From Macrostomum lignano (taxonomy: Eukaryota), in contig NIVC01000012.1 of assembly GCA_002269645.1 (NCBI GenBank), positions 1,240,001 through 1,304,000 of the forward strand: a stretch of 64,000 bases of DNA. Direction: 5' to 3'. The position numbers and the translations under genes were made by a program. Shown here piece by piece: positions 1 through 48,082 of the stretch. Under the pieces are notes generated by a model. It was not told the DNA's origin. It made no database searches and saw only the letters and a list, made by a program, of their open reading frames with translations. Numbering within the stretch: position 1 is the stretch's first letter; each line of letters opens with the position of its first letter.

Positions 1-3000
1 TACTTGGATGTACTTGATTGTGACGACAACGCGATAGCGACGACTGCCGCCGCACTTGGTCACGTGGTCTTTGTCGCCCTTGCACTTGATTTTCTTGCAC
101 GGAACGGCCGAGCGCTTCACCTTCTTGATGCAGTGCTGCGTGCAACGAGGCGGCAGAGACATCGTGCACTTCACACGCGACGTGTAGAAGATGTGCGTCG
201 TGACGCTCTTCGCCCTGCCAGGCTTGCACTCTTTGCGGATGATCTTGGCTTTCGGACAAGTTCTCGGAGCTGCAATCAAGGCGAAAGCGAATAATCACTT
301 AGCATAGTTACGAATAATCTACATAGTTTACGGATTCGGCTTCTCTTAACATGCGCCAATGGCGTTGCAAGTCACGCCTGGGGCACAAAGGTGCAAAAGG
401 TATTAATATACTCGTTTTTCACGAGTGCATTTACTTACGGCACCGGATCTTCTTGATGACCTTCCGGCTCTTGGGAACGCATTTCTTTCCGTTCCACCGG
501 TAGGTGACTCGAGTAAACACGCGATAGGCCCTGTGCTTCTTGCAGTGACGGATGAGAGTCCTGCTCGAGCAGTCCTTCCTGCAAATCTTCTTTGCAGAAA
601 TCTTGCGCTTCTTCACGCAGATTATCTTGCACACCCGTTTTCCTCCTGACTTTGATTTTGATTTTCCCATGTCTGAAGTTGTAAATTGTAAATTACAAGT
701 TATTAAGCATCAGACCAGCATCTAGCATGTGTCCGTTCTCCTACCTGTGCACACTTCCCGAACGACGCTGCTGACGATGGAATCAAGCTTGTTAAAGTTT
801 CCGGCTCGCCAGAATCTTCCTTTGCTTGAGATGCCCTTTAGTTCAGCCCTGCAGCAGTAGATTTCGAAAGCAAGCATGCTTCGCTTATAATGTCTTATTT
901 GAATCAGGTAACCTATGTTCTGTAATACAGTTTAAGAAATGTATTCTTACGGATTAATCTTGTCGGTCACGCTTGGGTCGGGGTTGTAGATTCCGACAGA
1001 GACAAAGCGGGCGCCCTTCTTCTTCAAGACTTTAGCCGAGGCGACGGGGTCACCCATCGTGCTCTTCCGTCAGTGATGACCACGACAATGAACGGGACTC
1101 CAGCTCGTCTCTTCGGGTAGATGTCACTGTTGACAAGGTCGATAGCCGCATAAGTCATTGTGATTCCCTCGTCTCGTGGAAGCTTCGACATGGCGGCCAG
1201 AACCTGCGACTTGGTTTTGTACTTGTCCAAGTTGAACACGAGTTTCGGTCTGGTCGAATAAGTGACAACAGCAACGCGAACGCCAGTCGGAGATACGCCC
1301 ATCCTGCGAACGATGTGCTGAACAAAGCGAGATTCTTTGGCAAAATCGGCGTCGTGAATGCTGGTCGAAGAGTCCAGAACGAACACGAGGTCGGCAACCT
1401 TGCTGCAGGTGCGACTTGGCGGAACAACCAGACCGGTGCAAACCTTCTTCTTCTTGTAGTAATACGTAGTGGTGTAGGAGTACTTGTGCCCAGCCGAGCA
1501 TCGCGTGTGCACCTTTCGTGGCTTCCTGCAGCGATGTGGCGGCTTCGGACACAACACGCGAGAGTGGATCAGCTTGCGGATGCAGTGCAGTGTGCAGATA
1601 CGGCCGCTGCACCTCTTCTTAACGGTGGAAGTCGCGATCGTGAGAGTCCGGTACTTCCTGCCCTTGCCGCACGAAGTTCGCTTGATGGTCTTCGACCCCT
1701 TCGGGCAAACCACTGGGCATGGATAGTGCTTGACGGTCCTGTGCTTCCTGCATTTCTTTCCGACTCGTGTATTCCAGGTAGTGATGACGGATCGGTAGCG
1801 CCTCTTACCTCCGCACTTGGTAAGCTTGACCTTCTTGGCCTCGTCGCACACGATGTGAAAGCACGGGACACCAGACTTGGTCACTCGCTTTGTGCACACC
1901 TGTCGGCATACGATCGGCTTCTTCTTGCTGCACACAATCTTACCAGAGTAGAAAATCGTAGTGGTGACCTTGTGCTTGGCTCCCTTCGTGCAGTTGCTGG
2001 TAGTCGTCCTCGACTTCGGGCACCGTCGGGGTGCTGAAATTATAAGTTATGAGTAAGGTCATATCATTTTTTGTTTTCGAAAAGTTAGTGCTGGCTGCGA
2101 AAGTACTAAAGTGGTTGTTACTAATTTTCTTAGCTCTTCATGCTGGTAGAAAAGTAATCAGTAAAGATCGTTTGTACAACAATAACGACAGCAGCAACAA
2201 AACACACCTCTCGCTGGCCACGAGTAAAGAACGTTCGTACACTTTATTGAAAGCTGTATTGGCGCCATTGAGACGTCAGATAGAAGCATTTTGGTTTGTA
2301 GTACGTTTCTAATATCAAGCCTAATTATTAAACGATTTTGCCCTTGTTGTCTACAGACGTTACCCTGCATTTCAAGGTAGCTAGGCTTAAAAGATCAGAA
2401 GCTAAGGCATAAACATAATTTCATTTATTAATCATATTTACTATACTATCAAAGTCCACTCTGTCGTGCATTCCTTGCCTTGTTTTAACCTAAGCTCGAA
2501 ACCGAAATTTTCAGTTATTAATTTTCAGATACTCTCGAAAACTTCTGCAATAAGTTGGATTTCCTTGAAAAGAAATTTTCTGAAACTTAATTAACTATTC
2601 TATTATTTTTCGTCACATACAGATGGGTCTTATGTTAAACAAAGTTTTGCGTTCGTCAATAGAGTTTTTTATAGTGCTCAATCGAAAACTATTGTTTCAT
2701 CTCATTACTTTGAATCTTCTGGATTCAAGAATCGAAAACAAAATACAAGGGCTGAAAGAACAAGAAACCCATCACCCTGAAAACATGTCTCAGGTACAAT
2801 ACTTAGAAGTTACAGATTTAGTGAAAGTGCTTAAATAAATCAAACAGCAATTGAATGAACAATTGCATTTCTTACAGTTTGAAATAACAAATAGTTTGCA
2901 AAAACAAGAGACTAAACTTACGGCATGGGAGTCTCTTCTTCGTGATACGCTTCAGCGGTACACAGCGTCCGCGAATTCGCTTGTAGTAAACCTCGATCAA

Positions 3001-6000: not shown

Positions 6001-9000
6001 GGTAGGTGACTCGAGTAAACACGCGATAGGCCCTGTGCTTCTTGCAGTGACGGATGAGAGTCCTGCTCGAGCAGTCCTTCCTGCAAATCTTCTTTGCAGA
6101 AATCTTGCGCTTCTTCACGCAGATTATCTTGCACACCCGTTTTCCTCCTGACTTTGATTTTGATTTTCCCATGTCTGAAGTTGTAAATTGTAAATTACAA
6201 GTTATTAAGCATCAGACCAGCATCTAGCATGTGTCCGTTCTCCTACCTGTGCACACTTCCCGAACGACGCTGCTGACGATGGAATCAAGCTTGTTAAAGT
6301 TTCCGGCTCGCCAGAATCTTCCTTTGCTTGAGATGCCCTTTAGTTCAGCCCTGCAGCAGTAGATTTCGAAAGCAAGCATGCTTCGCTTATAATGTCTTAT
6401 TTGAATCAGGTAACCTATGTTCTGTAATACAGTTTAAGAAATGTATTCTTACGGATTAATCTTGTCGGTCACGCTTGGGTCGGGGTTGTAGATTCCGACA
6501 GAGACAAAGCGGGCGCCCTTCTTCTTCAAGACTTTAGCCGAGGCGACGGGGTCACCCATCGTGCTCTTCCGTCAGTGATGACCACGACAATGAACGGGAC
6601 TCCAGCTCGTCTCTTCGGGTAGATGTCACTGTTGACAAGGTCGATAGCCGCATAAGTCATTGTGATTCCCTCGTCTCGTGGAAGCTTCGACATGGCGGCC
6701 AGAACCTGCGACTTGGTTTTGTACTTGTCCAAGTTGAACACGAGTTTCGGTCTGGTCGAATAAGTGACAACAGCAACGCGAACGCCAGTCGGAGATACGC
6801 CCATCCTGCGAACGATGTGCTGAACAAAGCGAGATTCTTTGGCAAAATCGGCGTCGTGAATGCTGGTCGAAGAGTCCAGAACGAACACGAGGTCGGCAAC
6901 CTTGCTGCAGGTGCGACTTGGCGGAACAACCAGACCGGTGCAAACCTTCTTCTTCTTGTAGTAATACGTAGTGGTGTAGGAGTACTTGTGCCCAGCCGAG
7001 CATCGCGTGTGCACCTTTCGTGGCTTCCTGCAGCGATGTGGCGGCTTCGGACACAACACGCGAGAGTGGATCAGCTTGCGGATGCAGTGCAGTGTGCAGA
7101 TACGGCCGCTGCACCTCTTCTTAACGGTGGAAGTCGCGATCGTGAGAGTCCGGTACTTCCTGCCCTTGCCGCACGAAGTTCGCTTGATGGTCTTCGACCC
7201 CTTCGGGCAAACCACTGGGCATGGATAGTGCTTGACGGTCCTGTGCTTCCTGCATTTCTTTCCGACTCGTGTATTCCAGGTAGTGATGACGGATCGGTAG
7301 CGCCTCTTACCTCCGCACTTGGTAAGCTTGACCTTCTTGGCCTCGTCGCACACGATGTGAAAGCACGGGACACCAGACTTGGTCACTCGCTTTGTGCACA
7401 CCTGTCGGCATACGATCGGCTTCTTCTTGCTGCACACAATCTTACCAGAGTAGAAAATCGTAGTGGTGACCTTGTGCTTGGCTCCCTTCGTGCAGTTGCT
7501 GGTAGTCGTCCTCGACTTCGGGCACCGTCGGGGTGCTGAAATTATAAGTTATGAGTAAGGTCATATCATTTTTTGTTTTCGAAAAGTTAGTGCTGGCTGC
7601 GAAAGTACTAAAGTGGTTGTTACTAATTTTCTTAGCTCTTCATGCTGGTAGAAAAGTAATCAGTAAAGATCGTTTGTACAACAATAACGACAGCAGCAAC
7701 AAAACACACCTCTCGCTGGCCACGAGTAAAGAACGTTCGTACACTTTATTGAAAGCTGTATTGGCGCCATTGAGACGTCAGATAGAAGCATTTTGGTTTG
7801 TAGTACGTTTCTAATATCAAGCCTAATTATTAAACGATTTTGCCCTTGTTGTCTACAGACGTTACCCTGCATTTCAAGGTAGCTAGGCTTAAAAGATCAG
7901 AAGCTAAGGCATAAACATAATTTCATTTATTAATCATATTTACTATACTATCAAAGTCCACTCTGTCGTGCATTCCTTGCCTTGTTTTAACCTAAGCTCG
8001 AAACCGAAATTTTCAGTTATTAATTTTCAGATACTCTCGAAAACTTCTGCAATAAGTTGGATTTCCTTGAAAAGAAATTTTCTGAAACTTAATTAACTAT
8101 TCTATTATTTTTCGTCACATACAGATGGGTCTTATGTTAAACAAAGTTTTGCGTTCGTCAATAGAGTTTTTTATAGTGCTCAATCGAAAACTATTGTTTC
8201 ATCTCATTACTTTGAATCTTCTGGATTCAAGAATCGAAAACAAAATACAAGGGCTGAAAGAACAAGAAACCCATCACCCTGAAAACATGTCTCAGGTACA
8301 ATACTTAGAAGTTACAGATTTAGTGAAAGTGCTTAAATAAATCAAACAGCAATTGAATGAACAATTGCATTTCTTACAGTTTGAAATAACAAATAGTTTG
8401 CAAAAACAAGAGACTAAACTTACGGCATGGGAGTCTCTTCTTCGTGATACGCTTCAGCGGTACACAGCGTCCGCGAATTCGCTTGTAGTAAACCTCGATC
8501 AAGTACTTGTAGGCGGAGTGCTTCTTGCAGCGCTTGAGCACGGCCTTAACTTTACACGGAGTAGGGACTGGTGGGCAAGGCTTTTTCTTGCTAACCATGT
8601 GTCTGACGCACTTTGCGGTGCACTTGCCCTTGTGAACGCACGAGCGACGAACAGTGTAGCTGATGATGGACTTGACCTCGAACAAGCTGTGCGACTTGCC
8701 CTTGGAGCAGGGTTTACGGATGACCTGAGTCTTCGGGCACTTGATCGGACACGGATAGCGCTTGGTGGTCTTGTGCTTCTTGCAGATGCCTTTTACTTCG
8801 GTGTACTTGATGGTGACGACAACACGATAGCGACGACTGCCGCCGCACTTTGTCACGTGGTCCTTGTCCTTCTTGCACTTGATTTTCTTGCACGGAACAG
8901 CCGAGCGCTTCACCTTCTTGATGCAGTGCTGCGTGCAACGAGGCCGCTTCGACTTTGTACACCTGACATGCGACGTGTAGAAGATGTGCGTCGTGACTCG

Positions 9001-12000
9001 CTTGACGACTCCCGGCTTGCACTTTGTGCGGATTGTCTTGGCCTTCGGACAGCGTCTTGGTGCTGCATTGTGTTTACATTTTGATCAAAGAATGAGATAT
9101 CATTTAGGGAAACTAGAACACTTACTTAAGAGCGTACTTAAAAAGCATGATTATCAATACTTACGACAAGGCTGCTTCTTGACGATCCTTGTGCGGTGTT
9201 TGCGGCACTTTCCGTCGACCAGCCTGTAGCTGATTTGCAGGAACAGTCGGTAAGCCGCGTGCTTAGTGCACTTCTTCACAATCATTGCCGGATCGCAATG
9301 GATTTTGATGATCTTGCACTTTTTCTTAGTGACAGTCTGCTTCCTAATGCACTTGCCGCCGCGATCGATAAACACCACCTTGGTAAGCTTCCTGTAGCCC
9401 TTGCGGCACTTCTTGTCCAGGAGCAGCAGAGGCTTCCTGTTGCACTTGCACTTAATGATGGACACCTGGACTTTCTTCTTGTGACACACCCAGCCGGTTT
9501 TGTACTTGCGCGACTCGTAGAAGTTCAGGAAGGTCTGCGTGCGTCCAGCCTTGCACTTGCTGCCGACCGTCGTCTTGTGGTAGTGAATCTGGTGGGACGA
9601 GCAGCCAGAGCAGCGGACGCGACGCACGGATTTTCGTCGCCAGACACAGCGTCCGTGGACCCGAGTGCGGTACTTCGTTGTGATGGTTCGGAAGTTGTGC
9701 ACACACTTGGTGGTGTGGTAGGATAGCTGGTATCGGCACTTGCGCTTCTTGCACGGCTTCCTGGCTGACCGCTTGTGCTTCTTCACGCACACAATCTTGC
9801 AGCGGCGCGCTTTTCCAGACTTCAAAGCACCTGAGAAACAGTTGTGCATTCGTTTAAAGTAAGGTATGCTTGTAAACCATTGCGAACTAAAATAATTGGT
9901 TGCTAAACGTTTTAGGCATTGGGACTTACGGTGACACACTCGCTTCTTCACGTAGTAATAGGTGATGATGTACGAGTGTGAGTTCTTCTTCGAGCATCGG
10001 ACGTGCACCTTGCGCGGCTTCCTGCAGCGATGTGGCGGCTTCGGACACAACATGCGAGAGTGGATCAGCTTGCGGATGCAGTGCAGTGTGCAGATACGGC
10101 CGCTGCACCTCTTCTTAACGGTGGAAGTCGCGATCGTGAGAGTCCGGTACTTCCTGCCCTTGCCGCACGAAGTTCGCTTGATGGTCTTGGACCTCTTCGG
10201 GCAAACCACTGGGCACGGATAGTGCTTGACGGTCCTGTGCTTCCTGCACTTCTTTCCGACTCGTGTATTCCAGGTAGTGATGACGGATCGGTAGCGCCTC
10301 TTACCGCCGCACTTGGTAAGCTGACCTTCTTGGCCTCGTCGCACACGATGTGAAAGCACGGGACACCAGACTTGGTCACTCGCTTTGTGCACACCTGTCG
10401 GCATACGATCGGCTTCTTCTTGCTGCACACAATCTTACCAGAGTAGAAAATCGTAGTGGTGACCTTGTGCCTGACTCCCTTTGTGCACTTCGTTTTGGTT
10501 ACTCTCGTCTTCGGGCACTTGCGAGGTGCTAAAATATTAATTCAATAAGCAGATATAAACCCTGGTTTTGAAACTTCTATTTTGACGAGTAGATTAGCTA
10601 CCCTTGCTACTTGTCAAGGAACGAGCTACTTACGGCAAAGAAGTCGGGCAATTGTCTCTCGCTTGTAGATGACACAAGTTCCGCGAACATTCCTGTAGAG
10701 CGCCTTGATCTGGTACTTGTATGCAGAGTGTTTGCGACACTTGGTCCAGAAGGGCGGAGGCTGCTTGCAGCGACGATCTGGCGGACGCGTTTTGCACCGC
10801 TTTCGCGATCGCAGAACTCGTCTGACGCACTTCACTGTGCACTTGCCCTTGTGAACGCACGCGCGACGAACGGTGTAGCTGATGATGGACTTCACAGAGA
10901 ACTTGCGACCCTTTTTGCAAGGCCTTATGATGGTCTGAGTCTTTGGGCACTTGACCGGACACGGATAGCGCTTGGTGGTCTTGCGCCTCTTGCAGACGCC
11001 TTTTACTTGGATGTACTTGATTGTGACGACAACGCGATAGCGACGACTGCCGCCGCACTTGGTCACGTGGTCTTTGTCGCCCTTGCACTTGATTTTCTTG
11101 CACGGAACGGCCGAGCGCTTCACCTTCTTGATGCAGTGCTGCGTGCAACGAGGCGGCAGAGACATCGTGCACTTCACACGCGACGTGTAGAAGATGTGCG
11201 TCGTGACGCTCTTCGCCCTGCCAGGCTTGCACTCTTTGCGGATGATCTTGGCTTTCGGACAAGTTCTCGGAGCTGCAATCAAGGCGAAAGCGAATAATCA
11301 CTTAGCATAGTTACGAATAATCTAATATTTGGATTCGGCTTCTCTTAACATGCGCCAATGGCGTTGCAAGTCACGCCTGGGGCACAAAGGTGCAAAAGGT
11401 ATTAATATACTCGTTTTTCACGAGTGCATTTACTTACGGCACCGGATCTTCTTGATGACCTTCCGGCTCTTGGGAACGCATTTCTTTCCGTTCCACCGGT
11501 AGGTGACTCGAGTAAACACGCGATAGGCCCTGTGCTTCTTGCAGTGACGGATGAGAGTCCTGCTCGAGCAGTCCTTCCTGCAAATCTTCTTTGCAGAAAT
11601 CTTGCGCTTCTTCACGCAGATTGTTTTGCAATGCGCTTTACCTTTTGATGATTTGCCTTGAACGAAGTAATTGTGTTTTTTAGGTTTTTTGTCGTAAAAA
11701 TAGTAAATTGTCTAGTAAAGCTTTAATCATATTAAAACATTAAAAAAATTTTTTACCTAGACACAAATGCTTTCGCTGGTAGTAATAGGTGATGATGTAG
11801 GAGTACATGTGTCCGGCTGAGCATCGAACGCGCACTTTGCGTGGCCTCCTGCAGCGATGTGGCGGCTTTGGACACAGCACACGAGAGTGGATCAGCTTGC
11901 GGATGCAGTGCAGTGTGCAGATACGGCCGCTGCACCTCTTCTTAACGGTGGAAGTCGCGATCGTGAGAGTCCGGTACTTCCTGCCCTTGCCGCACGAAGT

Positions 12001-15000
12001 TCGCTTGATGGTCTTCGACCCCTTTGGGCAAACCACTGGGCATGGATAGTGCTTGACGGTCCTGTGCTTCCTGCACTTCTTTCCGACTCGTGTATTCCAG
12101 GTAGTGATGACGGATCGGTAGCGCCTCTTACCGCCGCACTTGGTAACACTGACCTTCTTGGCCTCGTCGCACACGATGTGAACGCAAGGAACAGCAGACT
12201 TGGTCACTCGCTTGATGCAATGCTGGTGACAAACTTTCGGACTTCTTTTGTGGCAGATGATCTTGCCAATGTAGAAAACTTTGGTTGTGACTTTGTGCTT
12301 TGCTCCCTTTGTACAGTTGCTGGTAGTCGTCCTCGACTTCGGGCACCGTCGGGGTGCTGAAATTAGAAATTTTTAACATAAGCGATATGCTGATTTATTT
12401 GATTAGAATGCTGTTGTTATCGAACTAATTTCTTGTGTTGTTTGCACGTACTACTGTAGAATGTGAATTTTGCAGGCACGTGTAATATTCCTTGTGTCCT
12501 GCTGAGAGAAACTGTACGAAAAACAGGAAAATTTTACTTTTTGTTGCATTGACATATTAAGCATTTATGGGGCTTCTTTACAAGGTCGAAAATGCAATAA
12601 CTGACCTTTCAAAACAATGTGTGTAGGGCTTTCGTCAGGGTAAATATCGATGCAATGAAATTTTGACGGTGTGATGGAGATTTGACTTAAGATTGTTGTT
12701 ACAAACTTTGATATGTAGCTTCCATTTATAACAGTTGTGCCAAATGATTGGCCGAAACGATTCTAACTGTTTAAAATACTTTTCCGAAATTTCACATCAG
12801 CTACTCTTTCTTTAACTGAGTCTACTGCTTAAGAAAAAGCTTCGTTCCTAATGTCATAATCCGAAGTTTCTCAACCAGTGGCAAATAAAGAGCTAAAAGT
12901 GCGCTTCCGTCGACCAGTATAAACTTTTAATCAGAGTTTTTACAGCAAGACAAATAGAGTGAACCAGTTTGTCTGAAACAATAATTTAAACAACTTCACC
13001 ATTTCTTAGGAGTGGTTGCTACTGAAAATTTCAACATAGGCTTGACAGCTAGTGCCTGAAAAAGCTGATTCCCCCAGAGAACCTAAAAAGCTTCGAATTA
13101 AACAAGTTTTTTAGGCTTTTTGTTTTAAAAAGTAAGTTTTTATCAGAAGCGCCACAATCGCACAGGAATAAGAGCAAAAAATTCTCTTACTGCACAAACC
13201 ATTTAAAATAAAGCGATCGAGCTACGATGCACCGGCAAAGTAAAATCCCAGGTCTGTGAAATCTCCAGTGGAATCCCCAGTGGAATCCCCTTGAATGGAA
13301 TCCCTTCCCTTAGTCAAATTTCTCAGGGGAATCTCCTCAGTAGAATCCCACTTGGTGGAAATCCAAAGAGTCGAATTTTAAGCAGTGAAATCCCAACCAT
13401 TAAAAGAGCATTCAGCATCCCTACTCAACAATGTATAAGTAAGTAATATGCACTTGGTAATGAAATCCCATAGAGCAACTCAGCATCATTCCCGCTCAGC
13501 ATCATTCCCGCTCACCATCATTCCCGCTCACCATCATTCCCGCTCAGCATCATTCCCGCTCACCATCATTCCCGCTCACCATCATTCCCGCTCACCATCA
13601 TTCCCGCTCACCATCATTCCCGCTCACCATCATTCCCGCTCACCATCATTCCCGCTCACCATCATTCCCGCTCACCATCATTCCCGCTCAGCATCATTCG
13701 AGCTCAGCATAATTTACTCTATTCCCCTCAGCACAATTCCCTGATCATTCATATCATACTGCACATGAGCATCTCACAGTCCCGCTCACTATCATCAATT
13801 GATGCAAACTAGTTTAGCATTAACGAAGCGTTCTTAAGGCAGGTGCATTAGTAAACTCGTAAAAAACAAATTAATGACGCAATAAAAAAGAAATTAAATT
13901 TCTAGGATCAGCGCATAATGGTACCTCCCCGCCTTTTCACTGGCGTTCAATAATTTTTCAGTGATTATCCGCTACGAGGTGGTCTCGAACCATCAATGGC
14001 TCTCTTAGCCTAAATTCTTAAAAAGGTTTCCCTCCCGTGTACAAAGGAACTGCTATTTACACTCAATGATGGTCAACACTCCCACTGAGCCTAGCTAGCA
14101 AAGGCAGAGTGATGATGCGATCTCGATTGGAATAGTAATTTAGCCAGTCAATGTTTTAGTATATCAAGTCGCAAACCAGTCGGTCAGAGGACCAGAGCAC
14201 GTACAATTGATCACATAAGCATTGTACACAGCCAGTCAGTCAGAAGGTGTAAGCTATAGATGCCTATAAGAAAAAGAAAATCCCATCACCACCTCACTGC
14301 CAGTGTGAAAAAAGAAAATTAATTAAAACCTTCAGTTCTGACTCTGATGCAACCTAAGAAGATGCTAGCTTTTCTGCAGTCACAGCCGATCAACTATAAT
14401 CCGACCTTGCAAAAAAGCAATTTTTCTTCCCGTAAAGCAAACGTTTTTTAAAATTTTATAACACGACGAAAATAACTCTTTAACGCTCAATCAGACACCA
14501 GCATAAGTCCAGACACCGTAAAATCCATCCAGCTATTTTAAAGCATTGAACTTCCACCTGACTAACTGACAACCGCAGGTTTAGTTATATAGACAGTAGA
14601 TACAAGTAACTTACGGCATGGGATTCTCTTCTTCGTGATACGCTTCAGCGGTACACAGCGTCCGCGAATTCGCTTGTAGTAAACCTCGATCAAGTACTTG
14701 TAGGCGGAGTGCTTCTTGCAGCGCTTGAGCACGGCCTTAACTTTACACGGAGTAGGGACTGGTGGGCAAGGCTTTTTCTTGCTAACCATGTGTCTGACGC
14801 ACTTTGCGGTGCACTTGCCCTTGTGAACGCACGAGCGACGAACAGTGTAGCTGATGATGGACTTGACCTCGAACAAGCTGTGCGACTTGCCCTTGGAGCA
14901 GGGTTTACGGATGACCTGAGTCTTCGGGCACTTGATCGGACACGGATAGCGCTTGGTGGTCTTGTGCTTCTTGCAGATGCCTTTTACTTCGGTGTACTTG

Positions 15001-18000
15001 ATGGTGACGACAACACGATAGCGACGACTGCCGCCGCACTTTGTCACGTGGTCCTTGTCCTTCTTGCACTTGATTTTCTTGCACGGAACAGCCGAGCGCT
15101 TCACCTTCTTGATGCAGTGCTGCGTGCAACGAGGCCGCTTCGACTTTGTACACCTGACATGCGACGTATAGAAGATGTGCGTCGTGACTCGCTTGACGAC
15201 TCCCGGCTTGCACTTTGTGCGGATCGTCTTGGCCTTCGGACAGCGTCTTGGTGCTGCATTGTGTTTACATTTTGATCAAAGAATGAGATATCATTTAGGG
15301 AAACTAGAACACTTACTTAAGAGCGTACTTAAAAAGCATGATTATCAATACTTACGACAAGGCTGCTTCTTGACGATCCTTGTGCGGTGTTTGCGGCACT
15401 TTCCGTCGACCAGCATGTAGCTGATTTGCAGGAACAGTCGGTAAGCCGCGTGCTTAGTGCACTTCTTCACAATCATTGCCGGATCGCAATGGATTTTGAT
15501 GATCTTGCACTTTTTCTTAGTGACAGTCTGCTTCCTAATGCACTTGCCGCCGCGATCGATAAACACCACCTTGGTAAGCTTCCTGTAGCCCTTGCGGCAC
15601 TTCTTGTCCAGGAGCAGCAGAGGCTTCCTGTTGCACTTGCACTTAATGATGGACACCTGGACTTTCTTCTTGTGACACACCCAGCCGGTTTTGTACTTGC
15701 GCGACTCGTAGAAGTTCAGGAAGGTCTGCGTGCGTCCAGCCTTGCACTTGCTGCCGACCGTCGTCTTGTGGTAGTGAATCTGGTGGGACGAGCAGCCAGA
15801 GCAGCGGACGCGACGCACGGATTTTCGTCGCCAGACACAGCGTCCGTGGACCCGAGTGCGGTACTTCGTTGTGATGGTTCGGAAGTTGTGCACACACTTG
15901 GTGGTGTGGTAGGATAGCTGGTATCGGCACTTGCGCTTCTTGCACGGCTTCCTGGCTGACCGCTTGTGCTTCTTCACGCACACAATCTTGCAGCGGCGCG
16001 CTTTTCCAGACTTCAAAGCACCTGAGAAACAGTTGTGCATTCGTTTAAAGTAAGGTATGCTTGTAAACCATTGCGAACTAAAATAATTGGTTGCTAAACG
16101 TTTTAGGCATTGGGACTTACGGTGACACACTCGCTTCTTCACGTAGTAATAGGTGATGATGTACGAGTGTGAGTTCTTCTTCGAGCATCGGACGTGCACC
16201 TTGCGCGGCTTCCTGCAGCGATGTGGCGGCTTCGGACACAACACGCGAGAGTGGATCAGCTTGCGGATGCAGTGCAGTGTGCAGATACGGCCGCTGCACC
16301 TCTTCTTAACGGTGGAAGTCGCGATCGTGAGAGTCCGGTACTTCCTGCCCTTGCCGCACGAAGTTCGCTTGATGGTCTTGGACCTCTTCGGGCAAACCAC
16401 TGGGCACGGATAGTGCTTGACGGTCCTGTGCTTCCTGCACTTCTTTCCGACTCGTGTATTCCAGGTAGTGATGACGGATCGGTAGCGCCTCTTACCGCCG
16501 CACTTGGTAAGCTTGACCTTCTTGGCCTCGTCGCACACGATGTGAAAGCACGGGACACCAGACTTGGTCACTCGCTTTGTGCACACCTGTCGGCATACGA
16601 TCGGCTTCTTCTTGCTGCACACAATCTTACCAGAGTAGAAAATCGTAGTGGTGACCTTGTGCCTGACTCCCTTTGTGCACTTCGTTTTGGTTACTCTCGT
16701 CTTCGGGCACTTGCGAGGTGCTAAAATATTAATTCAATAAGCAGATATAAACCCTGGTTTTGAAACTTCTATTTTGACTAGTAGATTAGCTACCCTTGCT
16801 ACTTGTCAAGGAACGAGCTACTTACGGCAAAGAAGTCGGGCAATTGTCTCTCGCTTGTAGATGACACAAGTTCCGCGAACATTCCTGTAGAGCGCCTTGA
16901 TCTGGTACTTGTATGCAGAGTGTTTGCGACACTTGGTCCAGAAGGGCGGAGGCTGCTTGCAGCGACGATCTGGCGGACGCGTTTTGCACCGCTTTCGCGA
17001 TCGCAGAACTCGTCTGACGCACTTCACTGTGCACTTGCCCTTGTGAACGCACGCGCGACGAACGGTGTAGCTGATGATGGACTTCACAGAGAACTTGCGA
17101 CCCTTTTTGCAAGGCCTTATGATGGTCTGAGTCTTTGGGCACTTGACCGGACACGGATAGCGCTTGGTGGTCTTGCGCCTCTTGCAGACGCCTTTTACTT
17201 GGATGTACTTGATTGTGACGACAACGCGATAGCGACGACTGCCGCCGCACTTGGTCACGTGGTCTTTGTCGCCCTTGCACTTGATTTTCTTGCACGGAAC
17301 GGCCGAGCGCTTCACCTTCTTGATGCAGTGCTGCGTGCAACGAGGCGGCAGAGACATCGTGCACTTCACACGCGACGTGTAGAAGATGTGCGTCGTGACG
17401 CTCTTCGCCCTGCCAGGCTTGCACTCTTTGCGGATGATCTTGGCTTTCGGACAAGTTCTCGGAGCTGCAATCAAGGCGAAAGCGAATAATCACTTAGCAT
17501 AGTTACGAATAATCTACATAGTTACGGATTCGGCTTCTCTTAACATGCGCCAATGGCGTTGCAAGTCACGCCTGGGGGCACAAAGGTGCAAAAGGTATTA
17601 ATATACTCGTTTTTCACGAGTGCATTTACTTACGGCACCGGATCTTCTTGATGACCTTCCGGCTCTTGGGAACGCATTTCTTTCCGTTCCACCGGTAGGT
17701 GACTCGAGTAAACACGCGATAGGCCCTGTGCTTCTTGCAGTGACGGATGAGAGTCCTGCTCGAGCAGTCCTTCCTGCAAATCTTCTTTGCAGAAATCTTG
17801 CGCTTCTTCACGCAGATTATCTTGCACACCCGTTTTCCTCCTGACTTTGATTTTGATTTTCCCATGTCTGAAGTTGTAAATTGTAAATTACAAGTTATTA
17901 AGCATCAGACCAGCATCTAGCATGTGTCCGTTCTCCTACCTGTGCACACTTCCCGAACGACGCTGCTGACGATGGAATCAAGCTTGTTAAAGTTTCCGGC

Positions 18001-21000
18001 TCGCCAGAATCTTCCTTTGCTTGAGATGCCCTTTAGTTCAGCCCTGCAGCAGTAGATTTCGAAAGCAAGCATGCTTCGCTTATAATGTCTTATTTGAATC
18101 AGGTAACCTATGTTCTGTAATACAGTTTAAGAAATGTATTCTTACGGATTAATCTTGTCGGTCACGCTTGGGTCGGGGTTGTAGATTCCGACAGAGACAA
18201 AGCGGGCGCCCTTCTTCTTCAAGACTTTAGCCGAGGCGACGGGGTCACCCATCGTGCTCTTGCCGTCAGTGATGACCACGACAATGAACGGGACTCCAGC
18301 TCGTCTCTTCGGGTAGATGTCACTGTTGACAAGGTCGATAGCCGCATAAGTCATTGTGATTCCCTCGTCTCGTGGAAGCTTCGACATGGCGGCCAGAACC
18401 TGCGACTTGGTTTTGTACTTGTCCAAGTTGAACACGAGTTTCGGTCTGGTCGAATAAGTGACAACAGCAACGCGAACGCCAGTCGGAGATACGCCCATCC
18501 TGCGAACGATGTGCTGAACAAAGCGAGATTCTTTGGCAAAATCGGCGTCGTGAATGCTGGTCGAAGAGTCCAGAACGAACACGAGGTCGGCAACCTTGCT
18601 GCAGGTGCGACTTGGCGGAACAACCAGACCGGTGCAACCCTTCTTCTTCTTGTAGTAATACGTAGTGGTGTAGGAGTACTTGTGCCCAGCCGAGCATCGC
18701 GTGTGGACTTTGCGCGGGGGTTTGCAGCCGTGTTTTTCCTTGCCACACTTGACTTTCTTTATCAAAGTCTTGTGAGGCACACATTTACTTCCTTTGACCG
18801 TGAAGTGAATTCGGATGGTTCTTCTATATCCTCGAATGCACGGTGTTGTTTTCGTCGTATCCTTTTTGCAAGACTTGCCTAAAATATTTAAACGGATTTG
18901 TATTAGTTGTTTGCCTGTTTTTGAGAAAAAGCTGTATATTCTAATAACAGTTTCATTCATGTTTTTAAATTAAATTTCTTACAATTTCGCTTTCGGATAA
19001 CCACTCGAGTTTTGTGGCACCGCCTGGATTCCTCGCCCTGATAGACGGTAACGAAGCTGGTAATGAAGCCGCTTTTGCAGGCTTTTCCCGTGGTTACATG
19101 CTGGTAGCTACGTTGCTTAGTGGTGCATCCACCACAGGGGATCAGTCGAACTAATTTTCCATGAACTCGAACGCATGGACCGGCAGGTTGCAGTCTTGTT
19201 AAGTACGTCCAATACACGCCGCGATAACGGCTTCCTTTACGGAGACATTGGGTCTCGATTTGGATCCTGGCCTTTCTTGGACAACGTTTTTTCAAAACGC
19301 ATCGCCGTTTAGTAACATGCAGTCTCTGGTAGCTGCATCTGCCTTTGTGTGAGGCGTAGAAACTAGAGTAGATCGCTTTACTACCTCCAGTGCACTTGCG
19401 CCCAACAGTTATGTGAAAGATTCGAATCTGGTGCTTGGAGCAGCCACTGCACGGAACTTTTCGAATGACCTTGATGCGAACTCGCTTGCAACTGCCGCGG
19501 GTTGTACTGTAGAATCCCCAGAAGATTCTACGAAAGCCTGATTTTCCGCAACGTTTTTCTATCATAAGCCGGCGCTTGACGCATCGAACTGCAATGTGTG
19601 GGAAAGATGCAATTCTGAAAGTGGCATAATATTGATATTAAATTTGATCATTTAGCCTAGTTAAACGACATTCTTACTCTTTCGACAGGGCTGCTTCCTT
19701 CGGACTAGCCGCTTGCTGCATCGCCAGACGCACTTTTTGTGGCTGCAATCGTGAATCTTGGAGGTGTGCACTCGCGTAACAACGCGTAGGCGCGTTTTAG
19801 GGTTGCATTTTCCAATGTGAACCTTTGTGCCTTCTTTGCAGACTGGAGCTGTAGGTGTAATATGGAAGTAATCGATAGAAGCATATTTTAGTTTTATACA
19901 GTACTATAATAAGCCTTTTAAATCAAATTTCACGCCAATTTAGTTCAACGGATCACTTACGATTGGTGCAACGAACTTTGTGCACCTGCTTGAATGGCAT
20001 ACAGGTGTTGCGAACCATCTTGTAGAACTTGACAATGCGCTTCTTATAGCCAGCAACGCATTTGCTAACCAGCACTCGGCGATACTTTGGACAGCGAATC
20101 TTCAGAGCGCCATGGACAGCTGGCTGGGCTACAAAGCTGATGCGCATGCGAAGTACGTACTTGTATGCGTACTTAAGCTTGATCCAGGTGCGAATATGAA
20201 TGTATACGGTGCTGATAACCTGCAGGGACGCATCATTAACATCAGCCCCAACACCGATCACCAGGATTGAAACGCTCATCTCCTGCAGTCTGTTGCTCTC
20301 TACTTCCACGCTGCGGCCGTAGTTAGAATCTCCCGAAGTGATGACGATGAGCATTTTGGCACTCTGCTCAGCTGAATCGGTTAGAACCTGTTCCCGAACT
20401 AATAAGAGGGCATCGCCTATGGCTCGGTGCTTGCCAGTCATCAGCTTGAGGCCCTTAATAGCGGTGATGACGCTTGATTGGCTGTGGTACTCAGTCAGAC
20501 GGAAAGCCAGGCTGGCACGGCTAGAGAACAGGACAACGGAGACGCGGACGCTCTTGGCGCCGATCTTCATCTTCTGAATCATAGAGATAATGAATTGCTT
20601 CTCGTAGCCAAAGTGCAACTCGCCAAGATCTTGCGAGGCCTGCATCACCAGAATGAGTTCCATAGCCTGGCTGGCGAAGCACTGGCTTTTCTCGCAGCCG
20701 CACGACTTCCTTTTAATAACTTTAGTAATCGGGTTGCATTTGTTGAGCGTTTTGACAAAGCCAATTTCCATGGTTTTGCGGAAGCCGTGCTTGCAGGGAG
20801 TCTTGTACCGAACCGGCTTGGGACACTTCAATACGCTGCTCATGGTCATTTTCACTGAAATTGTTTAGGTTTAGTAAGTCTGTTATTAGCATGCAATTCA
20901 CTGCCTGTGAGCCGCGATGGATCTATACAGGGAGCGGAGATTAATTTCTCCCCCGGAGATAAACTCGAACTAAATATTCAGATTTTATAATGCGCTGTTA

Positions 21001-23794
21001 ACAAATAAAGAATTCCGTTGTCCATGGTAGCGGAGATAAGCTACTGATAATCTCCGTACGTTTTAACACTAGGGAAAAGACAAAGCGAACAGGCAGAGTG
21101 TACTACATTAGAATAATACACTTTAACTCGGAGATACTCTATGTTTTGGAGTTTATGCCTAGGGTATCTTCTTGTTTCAGTGTATTATTATATATTTATA
21201 AAAGATACTGCTATGCCTACGGGCAATTGGAATGGTACCAAACATTACATAAGCCTTAGACAGATTGTTTAGATTTTGTATAAATAATGTATAAAACATC
21301 TCCCGTTTATTCATTTTTCTATGGCCGTCAGAATGACTTAGAAATTATTAACTTCGAGAGTTAAGTTCGAAGTTGTTTTGACCATAGAAAAATGAATTAA
21401 CGGGAGATATAGAAGTATTTGCTTTGACCATAGAAAAATGAATGAACGGGAGATATAGAAGTATTGTCCCCACTTGGCTCGGTCTTTCTGATCGACATAA
21501 GAAGCAGAAAACAATTTTAATCAGTTTAGGTGAATGGCTTGTACACGAAGTATAAAATTTGTAAACATGACTGACAGCATTAGTCTATGGTTAATTGTCT
21601 ATGGTTCTGATCGTTTTTATGGTCATATAGATCCTTTTTTTCGCCCGGGACAAATAAATTTTTCAACACAACACCACAGACTTATTTGACCGGGGCGATT
21701 GGGGAATAAGCGCCGTTTAATTCACATTCTATGGTTAAAAAGTCCAAGACTGTATTTAACGGTCTCGAGGCGATCGAAGCGAGCAGAGGACTATTGAGTG
21801 TGGCCGATTACTTTTTAACCATAAACTATGATTATTAATATTATATATGAAATTCGATTGCAATTTTACAATGCTAAAAATCTACTATGTTTGTTTGTGG
21901 CCAGTCCGTAGTCTATGGTAAAAGTATTTCACTTTCAATCGGAGGAGAATTCAATCGTCTAATGGTAAATTAAGTCTATGGTTTCAGAATTTTTGCCACT
22001 TGGATTTTTAAATATTGGATTATTATTTAATTCTGAAATCATAGACATAAGCGCATTATCGTATACACGATCAATTTCGGTTGATCATTCTATATGATAA
22101 TGCTATACTGATAGCTTTAAACGGTTTAATTCTCCTCAAAAGTGGGGACTTATTTTCGTCAACGACGGATTCCCGGCTTAGAATAATAGAATTGAATATC
22201 CATTCAGACTCAGCAGCAGACAAGAGTGTCCCCCCTTCTTCGCAAGAATTTCGAGCGTTTCTCAGTTGAGTGGCAAGACTCTGGGCCATAGACATTTATT
22301 CTGACACAGGACTCAATGCGCATCTCTCAATCTACAGGATTTGAGATAGACAGTTTGATGAAAACGAATGAAGACAGGAAATTAGAACAGTGGAAATTTT
22401 AATTTAATAACGCGTGTATCCTTGAACACCTTTGTCTTTTGCTGAGTATAAGCAATCGTACTTTTTATCAATCTTTCAATGCCGAATGGTACGAATTTTT
22501 GGAAAGCTATTGATCTAGCCGCAAAATTCAACTTTTAAAATCGAATGTCAACTCACTCTTCCATCGGATGTGCATGTGGATGAAGGCGTCAACCACGAAC
22601 TGAAGACTGGAAAACTTGGGCACCCAGACGTACTTTCCAGCTGTAGCGCGGCTCTTCCAAAATGCCCTGTTCAAAATCAAGAGTATTTAACTGCACAAGT
22701 TGCTTGGTGGCTGCACTTTAGGAATGAAATTAATTTTCTGCGCTCGTAATCTGTTTAAATTTTCGCAGTTCAATAACACAATAGCAGCAGTAAAACGAGC
22801 AACTCACTGAGACACATCGTAGCCCACCATAACTGGCAGGAATGTGACACCCTTGGCCGTTAGGTAGCTAACTTGATTCGACACGCTGCGTCCAGAGTTC
22901 GAGTCTACGCTAGCGAGCACCACGATCAGTTTGCCGCTGAACCGGCGTCCTTTCCTGAGAATGCGCCGCCTGTAGAAGTACAGAGCCTCGCCTAGCGCCA
23001 CGTTCCCAGCCTTGCTGGCGTATCGAGTTCGCCTAATCTTGGAGATGATGCTCGACTTGGCTGATTCGAAACCGAACAGCAAGTGAGGCCGGGTGCCGGC
23101 CACGATCATGTTGACGCGGACTCGATAGCGGGCGACTCGCAGCCGGTTGACCAGATGGGCGGCGAACTTGCGCCAGCGCTGGAAGTGCTTGCCGTCCACC
23201 AAGAATGTGAAATCGATGGTCGAGGTGCCGACACAGATGCCTTTGCGGCAGCCGCCGCGTAAGCCGCGACCGGCAACCCGCTTTTTTGGCGACGAGTGGC
23301 CTGCGATGTTTGGGCAGGGCTGAATGCATACATTGAACTATTATGCGTAAACTAAACTAAAATAAGTCAATTTACTAAATTCTCTAGAAAGTTATTTGCT
23401 GATTTTTGCTTCGTTTTCTTAGAAACAATTTAACCTGATCATTTGCGGTGCGTAAAGATAGTTTTATTATAGAGTAAGTAATGTAACGCCAATATATCAT
23501 TCACTTGTCATTTGTTATCAGAGTCAAATCCATTGACATCCATATAGATAGATGCCAGAATTCAGTTCGTTTATAAAATCCACACAAAAAATTATACATG
23601 TTGAGCCACATAATGGCAGGACTAAGTCAGTTCTAGTATTTTAAGCAAGCACAATCCAATGAGGTTTTTTAGCCACTGTCGTTAGGCCTTCTATTGGCCA
23701 AATTGAGTTGACTGGCCACAGAGTTTGGGTGCCATGTGGGGGGGGGGTCGAGTACTCGTGGTCTCTGGCAACTGAGTAAGGGCTGGGTGGGGCT

Positions 23795-23870
<76 letters not shown>

Positions 23871-23871
23871 T

Positions 23872-23946
<75 letters not shown>

Positions 23947-26085
23947 CCCGGGGCATCATTCTAACTGCATTGTCTCGTCTCTATTGTGCCCGAACCAACC
24001 CAACCAAACTGCTTTGATTAAAAAAAAATTCTGCACCAAGCTGACACACTGAAGGCACTGTTGGAAGCTGCTGTGCCCGGGGAGTGGGGGCAGGGCGTGC
24101 GCGGTCTTCACGTGCTGGCTACCGAATCAAGCAGCACGTGCGTCGTCACTTGTTGCTGCGCCCTCTCGGCCTCACCCTCCCTCCCTCCTCAGCTTAGATT
24201 CGTTCGCCATCAGAGTCAGTAAACACGCAGACTGCGCATTATGCCTTCCAGCGGCACGTGCCACCCCATGTTAATGCATTAGCTATAATAGTTGCATTAT
24301 TATGAGTAAACAACTTGGTTGCTGCGTTAACTGGGTGCCTGGAATACTTGGCGCGCAATGGAGCTCAAAAACTTTGCTTCACAGATTTTACTCAGCAACA
24401 GTTGAAACTTTCAGCTCAAAGTCACTCTGTCGCACAGAACAGAAGTTAAGCAATATCATTGGTGAATCTGTTTTGAAAAGGGTATTTTAACCAGCAGAGG
24501 TACTATCGGTGATGTAATCCGGCATGTCAGGGACCACAAGCATGTATAAGCGTCGTAGCATCAGGGGCGCATCTGTAGCGAGGAATGCCCTCTCCGGTGT
24601 TGAGAATGCGGAGCACTTTATCCGTGAATGCTCCGCCTTTACTCGGGACAGGCGCACCTACATCGGCCATTTTCAGGCCTGAGAATCTCTGCCACCTCGT
24701 CCACTACCTAAAGGCTACCGGGTGAGCGACAATCCACCTCCTGGACTCTCCGTAGGGGGGGGGGGTGCGCTGTGGAAACCGGCACCACTGGAGCACCGGC
24801 TGCCCGTGGTCGCCAGGGGTTAGCGGAATGGGCGGCAACGCCTCCCCGCTGCATCCGGGTGCCCAGAGCCCCCTGCAGCTGAGTCAAGTAAGTAAGTCAA
24901 TCATCAGGGGCGCAGCCGGGATCTTTTGTTAGTGATCCCATTTTTGGGTGGGCCTCTAATTGAGGGGTCCAATTTTCAGTAGGCGCCAGCACCATGGTTA
25001 CCGAAGCTGATTTTCCAACACTGGCAACGCTTCCGCGTGACATCCTGATCACCAATCGGTTGAAGAACTCCCGGGCCCACTGTTTCTGCTCATACTAATT
25101 GCAGCTTCCATGCAAGGCACACATGTTAACTATTTACACGTAATTATCTATATCCATAGTTATTAAGCTCTGACAAATTGAGTGAAAGGTGCCAAAAAAT
25201 AATTTGAAACTCACCGTGCCTCGAGATGGCTTTGGCAGCCAGATCGTCCACGCCCTCGTCCTCGGCCTCGATCTCGTTGATTGAATCGCCCGGATTTCCG
25301 TCCAACTCGATGGAATCCGGCACCTCGATAGCGTCGTTCATGTTCTCCAGCATTTGCTGCGCAATTCACGGGGATGGGGAGTGTGGTGAAAAATAGCCAT
25401 GGAACTGTCTAACTGTACACCTAGTTTAGCGCCAGTTTGTATCTCAAAAAGTTGAAGCAGGTCTTCTTTAATCGAAGAATATATCTACGACTATTTAAGA
25501 TTAGATCCAACACTTGATCATGACTAGATCTAAGATTAGATATAAGACTAGATCTAAGACCATATCTAAGACCATATCTAAGAGTAGATCAAGACTAGAT
25601 CTCAGAATAGTCTCTAGTAGACCATTTGATTACAAATGCATAGACATAATTTAACACAGTCTTAAAATAGCATATGTAAAGAACGCTTCTATGAATGTAA
25701 CACGGATAATTCTTAGTTAAGACGATGGTTAATTTATTTGATTTTCGAAAAATCATCACCTATAACTAGCAATAATGGAACGATTTCGAAAAGCTGTGTT
25801 ATATCCCTACAAACTAATTTGAGCAGTTGCTCATTTAAACTGCATAAAAGCACATGGCCTATCGCAGAAAATATAAAATTTATAATCTATGGATTAGAAC
25901 ATTCGTCATCTCAGCAAAGCATAAAGATAGTTTCTGGTCCGACAAGTACAGTAAAACAAAGCTTCACAGCAGTCAATTACCTCTGGCGTCTGCTCCGTTG
26001 CGTCGTCAGTTGCGGCGACCGCTACGGCGATGCAGAGCGCAAGCAGGAGGACCGCACGGCTGCATTTAGTAGCCGTTGACGGCAT
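1..26085 (-). CDS. Giant secreted Lys/Arg/Cys-rich modular protein with 5 vWA domains (multi-exon, 3' end beyond window start; adhesive/secretory-matrix-like)
   Basis: Phase-consistent GT-AG exon chain read by eye: 26085-25981 (signal peptide MPSTATKCSRAVLLLALCIAVAVAA), 25356-25215 (acidic), 23300-22808 + 22666-22557 (vWA1), 20854-19961 (vWA2), 19848-19678, 19588-18983, 18878-18146 + 18043-17940 (vWA3), 17867-17634, 17464-16826, 16720-16121, 16021-15356, 15253-14615, 12356-11757, 11656-11438, 11272-10634, 10528-9930, 9830-9165, 9062-8424, 7535-6453 + 6350-6247 (vWA4), 6174-5941, 5771-5133, 5027-4428, 4328-3663, 3560-2922, 2033-951 + 848-745 (vWA5), 672-439, 269-<1. About 15.1 kb coding. Three 1-bp deletions break the frame as assembled (10322, 6568/9, 1066/7). 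Confidence 0.85.
745..1413 (-). other. vWA domain 5 (copy of vWA3) with the same 1-bp deletion
   Basis: Same missing G at 1066/1067; shifted frame stops at 1024-1026. Confidence 0.85.
6247..6915 (-). other. vWA domain 4 (copy of vWA3) with 1-bp deletion after ITDG
   Basis: Near-identical to 17940-18610 but plus strand reads gctcttccgtc instead of gctcttgccgtc; shifted frame stops at 6526-6528. Confidence 0.85.
13483..13705. repeat. 16-bp minisatellite (catcattcccgctcac)n, intronic
   Basis: About 14 direct copies visible in the 2.25-kb intron. Confidence 0.9.
14612..18705. repeat. Further ~4.1-kb copy of the same exon cassette (matches ~2919-7011, offset 11,693-11,694)
   Basis: ORFs 15345/16818/17626 equal 3652/5125/5933 + 11693; a few substitutions (e.g. 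15415, 15168, 15224, 14623). Confidence 0.95.
17940..18610 (-). other. vWA domain 3, intact MIDAS, uninterrupted frame
   Basis: ADLVFVLDSSTSI (DxSxS), GITMTYAAI (T), VVITDG (D); helix 7 in the next exon (AELKGISSKGRFWRAGNFNKLDSIVSSVVREVC). Confidence 0.9.
20110..20680 (-). other. vWA domain 2, degenerate MIDAS
   Basis: MELILVMQASQDLGELHF...KIGAKSVRVSVVLFSS...MLIVITSGDS: vWA beta/alpha pattern, but DxSxS is replaced by QASQD and TDG by TSG. Confidence 0.85.
22557..23230 (-). other. vWA domain 1, degenerate MIDAS
   Basis: IDFTFLVDGKHFQRWRKF...RVRVNMIVAG...GNVALGEAL...KLIVVLASVDSNSG...VTFLPVMVG. Confidence 0.7.
23797..23943. repeat. (CT)n microsatellite
   Basis: Direct reading. Confidence 0.98.
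24490..24730 (+). mobile_element. Degenerate 3' fragment of a non-LTR retrotransposon ORF2
   Basis: Short frame GVENAEHFIRECSAFTRDRRTYIG resembles the E..EH....C....R C-terminal zinc-knuckle of LINE RTs; stops and frameshifts nearby. Confidence 0.4.
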
Positions 26086-29790: not shown

Positions 29791-30033
29791 CATGTATCGA
29801 CGAAGCCTTTCACTGGCTTTCAGTCATAAACAGCCCATTTGCTGTGCGAAATTATAGTTTTTTTTAAAAGCTTTCAAAAAATTTAGAAAGATTTTATTTC
29901 TTCTTTGCATTAGTGACCTATTTTACGAGTAGAAGGGAAACCTTTGAATATTTTCCGTGCACCTCTGCTTACAGCACGTAAGGAGATTCAATCATGACAA
30001 GACGCTGAGTTTTCGTACGAATCTGAGTAATAA

Positions 30034-39961: not shown

Positions 39962-41521
<1,560 letters not shown>

Positions 41522-47940: not shown

Positions 47941-48030
47941 AGATTAGATAGATGGATAGATAGACAGATAGATAGATAGATAAATAGATAGAAAGATAGA
48001 TAGATAGAAAGATAGATAGATAGGTAGATG

Positions 48031-48082
<52 letters not shown>

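Follow-up and report, generated by a model that had tools for sequence, protein, structure and literature searches.

A 64,000-nucleotide (nt) stretch of the Macrostomum lignano genome (assembly Mlig_3_7, contig NIVC01000012.1, about 1,240,001-1,304,000, in the same orientation), hereafter the window, to which all coordinates refer, carries one real, expressed gene for a giant, secreted, polycationic structural protein. The protein is an array of a basic, cysteine-rich module punctuated by von Willebrand factor A (vWA) domains. In databases the gene appears solely as a hypothetical protein cut short, and it has so far not been characterised; no paper discussing it (transcript RNA815_108 / Mlig000187) was found in the literature. 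The source is a flatworm, as an earlier note on this DNA, made from the letters, had supposed. As to function, we tentatively favour a matrix polycation that forms part of the epidermal secretions (mucus, rhabdites or both) and binds polyanionic glycans, a reading to which we give slightly less than an even chance.

The gene lies on the minus strand, begins with a start codon at 26085 and comprises 36 exons, the stop codon being 3.35 kilobases (kb) to the left of window base 1 (Table 1). The model was obtained by joining open segments solely via canonical GT-AG sites, with 10 kb from the left of the window added (locus L005) and each of three 1-base-pair (bp) deletions bridged with one N. The spliced chain of 18,030 nt is one frame with a lone stop at its end and encodes 6,009 amino acids (aa), 5,052 of them inside the window. 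The conceptual protein contains 16.4% K and 11.5% R (28% together), 7.7% C and only 3.0% D+E; its isoelectric point (pI) is about 10.7, its net charge about +1,490 and its mass about 693 kDa. Its cysteines number 460, which is even. At the N-terminus, MPSTATKCSRAVLLLALCIAVAVAA is followed by TDDATEQTPE; reading the sequence reveals an n-region with K7 and R10, a 15-residue hydrophobic core and an AVA-A/T cleavage site. The next exon is acidic, with 15 D/E in 47 residues. A secreted product is indicated by the predicted signal peptide, the vWA domains, the 460 cysteines and peptides found in deposited footprints (see below). The claims of the earlier note concerning a polycationic, disulfide-rich, secreted-type protein of more than 5,000 aa, with a signal peptide and then an acidic segment, encoded by a gene that runs past the window edge, are all borne out, the size being subject to a repeat and frameshift caveat considered below.

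The exon structure is regular. Module-exon junctions are in phase 1, with GTAAGT donors and a recurrent C/P-PRxCPK boundary, whereas the E exons end in phase 2 and a small F exon brings back phase 1. Single module exons and the E+F pair are bounded by phase-1 introns on both sides, so that these blocks can be gained, lost or skipped in frame. The 5' junctions, among them that between exons 1 and 2, and the small exon 22666-22557, which encodes the tail of vWA1, are corroborated by the annotated protein PAA94323.1. Inside every long C exon there is a 99-nt in-frame intron that can also be read as open frame (16120-16022, 9929-9831 and 4427-4329). The 33-aa stretch KSQCLKRLATNYFSSQWFTSIPYFKRMHNCFSG that it would encode was ruled out as coding: the intron has a GTAAGT donor and a TTTCTCAG acceptor, and the stretch is missing from the annotated protein.

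That the protein is made follows from the footprint peptides of Wunderer et al. (2019; PMC6410801; Dataset S2, sheets footprints_Trypsin_intact_1 and _2). Two transcripts in that dataset, RNA1509_167_1 (1,540 aa, pI 10.7, 'VWA') and RNA1509_2732_3 (1,207 aa), are both linked to RNA815_108. Their peptides map to the gene without exception (21 of 21), 18 of them in the window and 3 in exons X1 and X2 to its left. Peptide SAVPCVHIVCDEAK maps solely to the diverged exon E', and AGVPFIVVVITDGK solely to vWA3 (exons 8 and 9). The mapping indicates that the two transcripts are collapsed 5' and 3' parts of one gene, and that its protein ends up in material left on the substrate. The open frame is not a chance occurrence, since these peptides match and a homologue at 60% identity (described below) keeps the 20 cysteines of exon B.

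The gene is expressed body-wide and fairly highly, and is not tail-specific. In the body-fragment RNA-seq of Arbore et al. (2015; PMC4490696, Additional file 1), RNA815_108 received 5494 reads from the head, 5074 from head+testis, 4656 from head+testis+ovary and 7869 from the whole worm. These are about 0.02% of mapped reads per sample, and the positional class is 0,0,0, head-only fragments being as rich in the transcript as whole worms. Fragments of Mlig-ap1, the cohesive protein of the tail adhesive organs, gave 0, 1, 3.6 and 2136 reads in the same samples, class 0,0,+ (PMC4490696). In what looks like the transcripts-per-million column of a transcript-metrics table, the value is about 344.

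Much of the gene is a tandem array. Window positions 1-18,000 are a series of repeats in which five exon groups (A-B-C-D-E+vWA) recur at periods of 5,502, 5,497 and 6,196 bp, the odd 6,196-bp period being due to a 2.26-kb intron with a 16-bp minisatellite. This enlarged intron (12357-14614) also sits at the border with exon E', which is diverged and lacks a vWA domain. When units 2 and 3 are aligned over 5,502 bp, introns as well as exons, 1 mismatch and 4 gap columns separate them (about 99.9% identity). Exon copies differ among units at 0-3 sites, and E2 and E3 have no differences in 1,083 nt. The array has been expanded by recent tandem duplication of a 5.5-kb block of five exons. A second copy of the gene, 99.3% identical, is present on another M. 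lignano contig, as expected because M. lignano is a hidden polyploid.

In the assembly, three 1-bp deletions interrupt the frame, one near 10322 (exon Ca2) and two near 6568 and 1066, in two identical vWA exons. We take them to be mistakes of the assembly, or in any case unrepresentative, because the frame after each stays open and encodes detected peptides (for example, FVSVGIYNPDPSVTDK is still encoded in frame past the 6568 deletion), because last-exon peptides were detected, and because an independent database model (P0007; 2,693 aa) continues through the vWA domain into the next repeat unit. Real truncations are unlikely in view of the mass spectrometry (MS) peptides downstream of all three deletions and the read-through in P0007. 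The public annotation, PAA94323.1 (hypothetical protein BOX15_Mlig000187g2; UniProt A0A267H7R9, VWFA domain-containing protein), has 2,381 aa and omits over half of the modelled protein. It maps on 1027-26085 as a mosaic that passes, for example, from B1 to mid-D1, and from E' to C2 just past the frameshift. Its end may be a false stop caused by the 1-bp deletion in the vWA exon; its C-terminal 160 residues fit E_2 and the identical E_3 equally.

With near-identical units and three bridged frameshifts, the copy number is uncertain, and hence also the size of the protein and the number of modules. Independently of function, there might be fewer real units, giving a protein of some 2,500-3,500 aa, the extra 5.5-kb units and their shared indels being products of long-read assembly or polishing. 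The 99.9% identity of units 2 and 3 including introns, with the same 1-bp deletion in both, speaks for such inflation, as do the short-read transcript assemblies of just 7.6, 4.6 and 3.6 kb and the 2,381 aa of the annotated model. However, repeats of this kind are bound to be collapsed in assemblies from short reads and in models guided by transcripts, and the annotated model hops between units. Unit 1 and E' differ from the others at specific sites and a peptide of E' was detected, so at least two distinct units are real; P0007, too, extends past the vWA into another unit. On balance we consider inflation unlikely, while giving it real weight.

A profile hidden Markov model (HMM) built from 18 modules finds 94 module envelopes in the whole gene, of which only about 43 are distinct; 77 fall inside the window. 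The earlier estimate of roughly 70 four-cysteine modules was close in number, whereas about half of the modules turn out to carry six cysteines. Modules are 42-55 aa long and occur in two alternating forms. The 4-Cys form reads C-x8-15-C-x2-4-[GA]-[YF]-[RK]-x6-[YF]-x4-G-x-C-x10-12-C, and the 6-Cys form has an additional C-x3-C ahead of the last segment; a 212-aa exon comprises four modules in 6-4-6-4 order. The structure prediction of one and of four modules that the earlier note had called for was run with AlphaFold2, the paralogous modules serving as alignment. A single module gave a predicted local distance difference test score (pLDDT) of 79.7, with a short strand and a 12+12-residue hairpin. 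The four-module exon gave a pLDDT of 83.9 and all-beta hairpins, with a predicted template modelling score of 0.37. The models suggest well-formed beads whose mutual orientation is undefined, that is, beads on a string. In the module alignment, residues of the hairpin alternate between hydrophobic and basic. Each module is presumably clamped by two or three disulfides, judging from the invariant cysteines.

The module probably represents a new domain family. Pfam gave no match to it, whether whole exons or individual modules were searched, and even at E <= 10; PDB sequences searched with module and exon profiles yielded nothing relevant; and Foldseek against the PDB returned best E values of 0.7 and 0.18, to unrelated folds. 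The earlier note was thus right in leaving the module without a named family, but its suggestion of a degenerate TSP1-like fold found no Pfam, profile or fold support: TSP1 (PF00090) is absent from the Pfam matches at E <= 10, and the module has neither the W ladder nor CSxTCG.

The half-domains of midkine and pleiotrophin are small, very basic, TSR-like, three-stranded antiparallel beta structures held by disulfides, with the spacing C-x9-C-x~20-C-x9-C and often ending in P-C. Our module resembles these heparin-binding half-domains in cysteine spacing and in a GG...PC pattern, a likeness of style only. The spacing is what suggested a role in glycosaminoglycan (GAG) binding. Membership of that family was rejected at the sequence level: hhalign gave a probability of 0.15% (against an approximate human midkine sequence), and PTN_MK was absent from the Pfam and PDB-sequence matches. 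In the fold comparison no midkine or TSR chain was among the top 50 Foldseek matches and nothing fell below E = 0.18, Foldseek being weak on 50-residue domains.

The vWA domains, which make up about 15% of the protein, are the only part recognised by Pfam. There are five, as had been noted, matching at 45-110 bits against a cut-off of 23.8 (E = 1e-11 to 1.7e-31). DxSxS, the first element of the metal ion-dependent adhesion site (MIDAS), is confined to vWA3, 4 and 5 (DLVFVLDSSTS) and is lacking in vWA1 and vWA2. By eye, the translation of vWA3-5 also provides the T (GITMTY) and the D (VITDGK) that complete the site, and these three domains are predicted to be competent for metal-dependent ligand binding. 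vWA4 and vWA5 are identical and vWA3 is almost identical to both; vWA3 is the sole repeat-type vWA free of a frameshift.

Relatives of the module appear to be confined to Macrostomum-type sequences, as judged from an exhaustive HMMER search with a four-module profile against 1.84 billion representatives. Of the five matches, three come from M. lignano and represent the gene itself, either as models or in garbled form. Another is a 249-aa open reading frame (ORF) in Logan assemblies of SRR31628392, SRR31628403 and SRR31628435. The Logan contig (L002) has the same exon order (A, B, C-like), its protein is 60% identical, and in exon B all cysteines are kept (20/20). Identity to the gene is 53% at third codon positions and 69-74% at positions 1 and 2. 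Divergence at third positions together with cysteine conservation indicates that this is the coding sequence of a related organism, kept by purifying selection. A gastropod match (P0005, Babylonia areolata; HMMER E = 4.6e-7) is spurious, profile comparison giving it a probability of 0.7%. A word-indexed search, in which the 462-aa exon C had no match and the model P0004 matched just itself, is uninformative beside the exhaustive profile search.

If the protein is a matrix component of epidermal secretions, as we favour, it would be produced by gland or epidermal cells along the entire body and packed into rhabdites or mucous granules with polyanionic partners, such as sulphated GAGs or mucins. 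Its dense positive charge would neutralise and condense these partners in the granule. After discharge, the stiff, disulfide-stapled basic hairpins could cross-link the slime layer and surfaces through multivalent electrostatic contacts, and the MIDAS-bearing vWA domains may contribute cation-dependent protein-protein links. A bolder form of the proposal, which we regard as doubtful, is that this is the long-missing basic structural protein of Macrostomum rhabdites or epidermal slime, and that the module is a domain not described before, a lineage-restricted beta-hairpin stapled by disulfides, with multivalent binding to sulphated glycans.

Several observations provide the setting for this proposal. 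The classical acidophilia of rhabdites points to a high content of basic protein. Body-wide expression, basic composition and presence in deposited material are the context for a role in rhabdites, localisation there being a candidate only. Mlig-ap1, another cationic protein of M. lignano, has its function blocked by heparin. Rhabdites of triclads (planarians) contain sulphated GAGs for which no protein partner is known (PMC5450325). The present protein would share with such rhabdite and sulphated-GAG systems a dense charge, a high cysteine content, granule-packaged secretion and underwater deployment, the rhabdite association again being that of a candidate. Among the roles offered in the earlier note, which were glue, mucus, rhabdite or cocoon, mucus and rhabdite fit the footprint peptides and the equal expression in heads. 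The cocoon does not: an eggshell, cocoon, prostate or other regional gland product conflicts with positional class 0,0,0.

Other points weigh against an epidermal matrix protein. The producing cell type is read solely from coarse body-fragment RNA-seq, and the putative glycan binding solely from charge. The footprint samples also hold cytosolic EF2 and HSP90 (PMC6410801); they are not pure secretions, and presence there does not prove specific secretion. A core rhabdite protein might have homologues across Rhabditophora, whereas this family was found only in M. lignano and one Logan contig set. Finally, size and copy number depend on 99.9%-identical units and three bridged frameshifts.

Some of the same evidence would suit a protein that is not released in mucus at all, namely a vWA linker of the extracellular matrix (ECM) or basement membrane, present throughout the body and binding heparan-sulphate proteoglycans. 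Non-regional expression and vWA domains with an intact MIDAS would be expected of it, the transcript's own annotation gives COL7A1 as the best human match (via vWA), and an ECM protein could show up in footprints, since these contain tissue contaminants. Like collagen VI/VII, matrilins, hemicentin and integrin I-domains, the protein has bona fide vWA domains (five, three with a complete MIDAS) in an extracellular multidomain setting. Unlike all of these, however, the bulk of it is a polycationic module seen in none of them. Moreover, collagen, EGF, FN3, laminin and Ig domains are absent, Pfam yielding vWA alone; extreme basicity and some 94 lineage-restricted modules are atypical of conserved basement-membrane components; and the family was not found beyond Macrostomum-type sequences, whereas core ECM proteins are conserved. 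We think an ECM linker unlikely, and less probable than an epidermal matrix protein.

Less probable still is a surface defence polymer, in which tethered beta-hairpin antimicrobials of the tachyplesin or arenicin kind would act either intact or after cleavage at the many dibasic sites and so shield the epidermis. The predicted long hairpins with alternating hydrophobic and basic residues, the very high net charge, and body-wide expression with external deposition are all in keeping with this idea. However, no sequence or fold match to antimicrobial peptide families was obtained, and the MS peptides span linkers and vWA domains, as expected of an intact protein. Defence could, in any case, be a side activity of a matrix role rather than a true alternative to it.

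Giant cationic secretory proteins are already known in M. lignano; what is new here is the combination of vWA domains with a folded, cysteine-stapled basic module. The closest comparison is with Mlig-ap1 (MH586844; PMC6410801), also a giant secreted protein of the species (5,407 aa), extremely rich in K and R, found in the same footprint proteome and likewise proposed to bind negatively charged glycans electrostatically (PMC6410801). Mlig-ap1 has cysteine-free, low-complexity GRK repeats flanking a C-lectin/vWD/C8/TIL/EGF core, is encoded on scaf1170 and is tail-specific. In contrast, the present gene, on NIVC01000012.1, encodes folded cysteine modules and vWA domains with no vWD, C8, TIL or EGF, and is expressed body-wide. 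Between them, Mlig-ap1 and Mlig-ap2 (scaf1170 and scaf3366) have vWD, C8, TIL, EGF, C-lectin, LDL and TSP1 domains and GRK or 221/255-aa repeats. Identity or kinship with either, the comparison proposed in the earlier note, was rejected given the different contig, the lack of any of their domains and class 0,0,0 versus 0,0,+. Motifs of the gene were not found in the ap2 sequence printed in the PMC6410801 supplement, and adhesion papers on other flatworm species report nothing similar. A further reading, in which the protein works as a cohesive polycation beside Mlig-ap1 and Mlig-ap2 in the tail adhesive organs and is the third part of their duo-gland temporary adhesive, is very improbable: its peptides do occur in adhesive footprints and it is polycationic, as is cohesive Mlig-ap1, but its expression in the head equals that in the whole worm (0,0,0) while every ap1/ap2 fragment seen in the table is 0,0,+, the tail-specific screens that yielded ap1 and ap2 did not recover it, and it has another scaffold and another domain content.

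Among more distant systems, sandcastle-worm cement coacervates and the basic, cysteine-rich mussel foot proteins are polycation/polyanion secretory systems. Dense charge, high cysteine content and, for the role proposed here, granule-packaged secretion and underwater deployment would be shared with them. In sequence they are unrelated to the present protein, for which nothing implies a DOPA or phosphoserine chemistry.

Table 1. Exons, domains and repeat units of the giant-module gene (window coordinates)
Feature	Position	Strand	Basis or subdivision
Exon 1: start codon and signal peptide MPSTATKCSRAVLLLALCIAVAVAA	25981..26085	-	ORF listing; junction per annotated protein
Exon 2: acidic, 15 D/E in 47 aa	25215..25356	-	
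Exons 3+4 (23300-22808, 22666-22557): vWA1, degenerate MIDAS	22557..23300	-	Pfam VWA E = 1.2e-11; exon 4 from PAA94323.1 mapping
Exon 5: module-vWA2-module, vWA2 without DxSxS	19961..20854	-	Pfam VWA E = 1.8e-29
Exons 6+7 (19848-19678, 19588-18983): five unique modules, including a long-loop SGCSxHQ variant	18983..19848	-	
Exons 8+9: two modules and vWA3, intact MIDAS (DSSTS...T...D)	17940..18878	-	Pfam VWA E = 1.7e-31
Tandem unit 1, ~18 modules	14615..17867	-	A1 17867-17634, B1 17464-16826, Ca1 16720-16121, Cb1 16021-15356, D1 15253-14615
2.26-kb intron with 16-bp minisatellite (~15 copies, 13479-13714)	12357..14614	-	
Exon E': diverged, four modules, without vWA, holds unique MS peptide SAVPCVHIVCDEAK	11757..12356	-	
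Tandem unit 2: A2, B2, Ca2, Cb2, D2; 1-bp deletion near 10322	8424..11656	-	
Exons E_2+F2: four modules and vWA4; 1-bp deletion near 6568	6247..7535	-	
Tandem unit 3: A3, B3, Ca3, Cb3, D3	2922..6174	-	
Exons E_3+F3: four modules and vWA5; 1-bp deletion near 1066	745..2033	-	Identical to E_2/F2
Exon A4 (672-439) and first 269 nt of B4	1..672	-	
Left of window, 3.35 kb: remaining B4, Ca4, Cb4, X1, X2, X3 with stop codon	L005	-	

The rest of the window contains unrelated genes and repeats. An ankyrin-repeat exon lies at 44465-45040 (-), a transmembrane exon of a Cys-loop (nicotinic-type) receptor at 55733-56605 (+), a sulfotransferase exon at 59369-59914 (+) and a complete single-exon FAXC/GST-like gene at 61025-61897 (-), which occurs verbatim on contig NIVC01000012.1 of GenBank assembly GCA_002269645.1. 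In a 431-aa ORF at 40226-41521 (-), what looks like a real N-terminal exon is joined to a microsatellite. Overlapping ORFs at 29046-29782 (+) contain LLYNAEMWTLT, which by eye recalls the C-terminus of a non-LTR retrotransposon reverse transcriptase; they had no Pfam match. A 21-bp satellite, AGTGATGAGTGTTGGATAATC, is repeated about 79 times at 30026-31673, has a very strong strand asymmetry (GC skew 0.60 in the 30-32 kb bin) and yields long spurious ORFs on both strands (29957-30928). An interstitial telomere-like repeat, CCCTAA-containing, with about 30 copies of the 12-bp TAAACCCTAACC, occupies 38975-39330, in the middle of the 1.7-Mb contig. Long microsatellites at 40234-40733, 47945-48356, 54456-54759 and 62702-63501, made of (TAGA)n in two cases, (TAAG)n and 67 copies of a 12-bp unit, translate as the pseudo-ORFs SIYLSIYL, LTYLLTYL and MSEFMSEF. 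Beyond the stop codon of the giant-module gene, about 6.9-8.5 kb left of the window (L005 42966-44555), there are at least 3 tandem units of about 645 bp with identical 101-aa pseudo-ORFs, presumably a non-coding satellite.

The history of the gene in the databases illustrates how a protein of this kind can escape notice. Near-identical exon blocks and single-base assembly errors shrank a gene for about 6,000 aa to a 2,381-aa 'hypothetical protein' in automatic annotation, and a published proteome, one sheet of which lists 14 of its peptides, left the protein undiscussed. To our knowledge, hardly anything has been learnt in molecular terms about which proteins make up flatworm rhabdites and slime. 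High body-wide expression, deposition on the substrate and extreme charge make this protein a concrete candidate, testable in a transgenic model amenable to RNA interference. A compact, basic, disulfide-locked hairpin would also be of interest for GAG-binding or underwater-adhesive biomaterials. If the proposed role is true, the gene would provide the first molecular handle on how the rod-shaped secretory bodies of flatworms condense and how they swell into slime.

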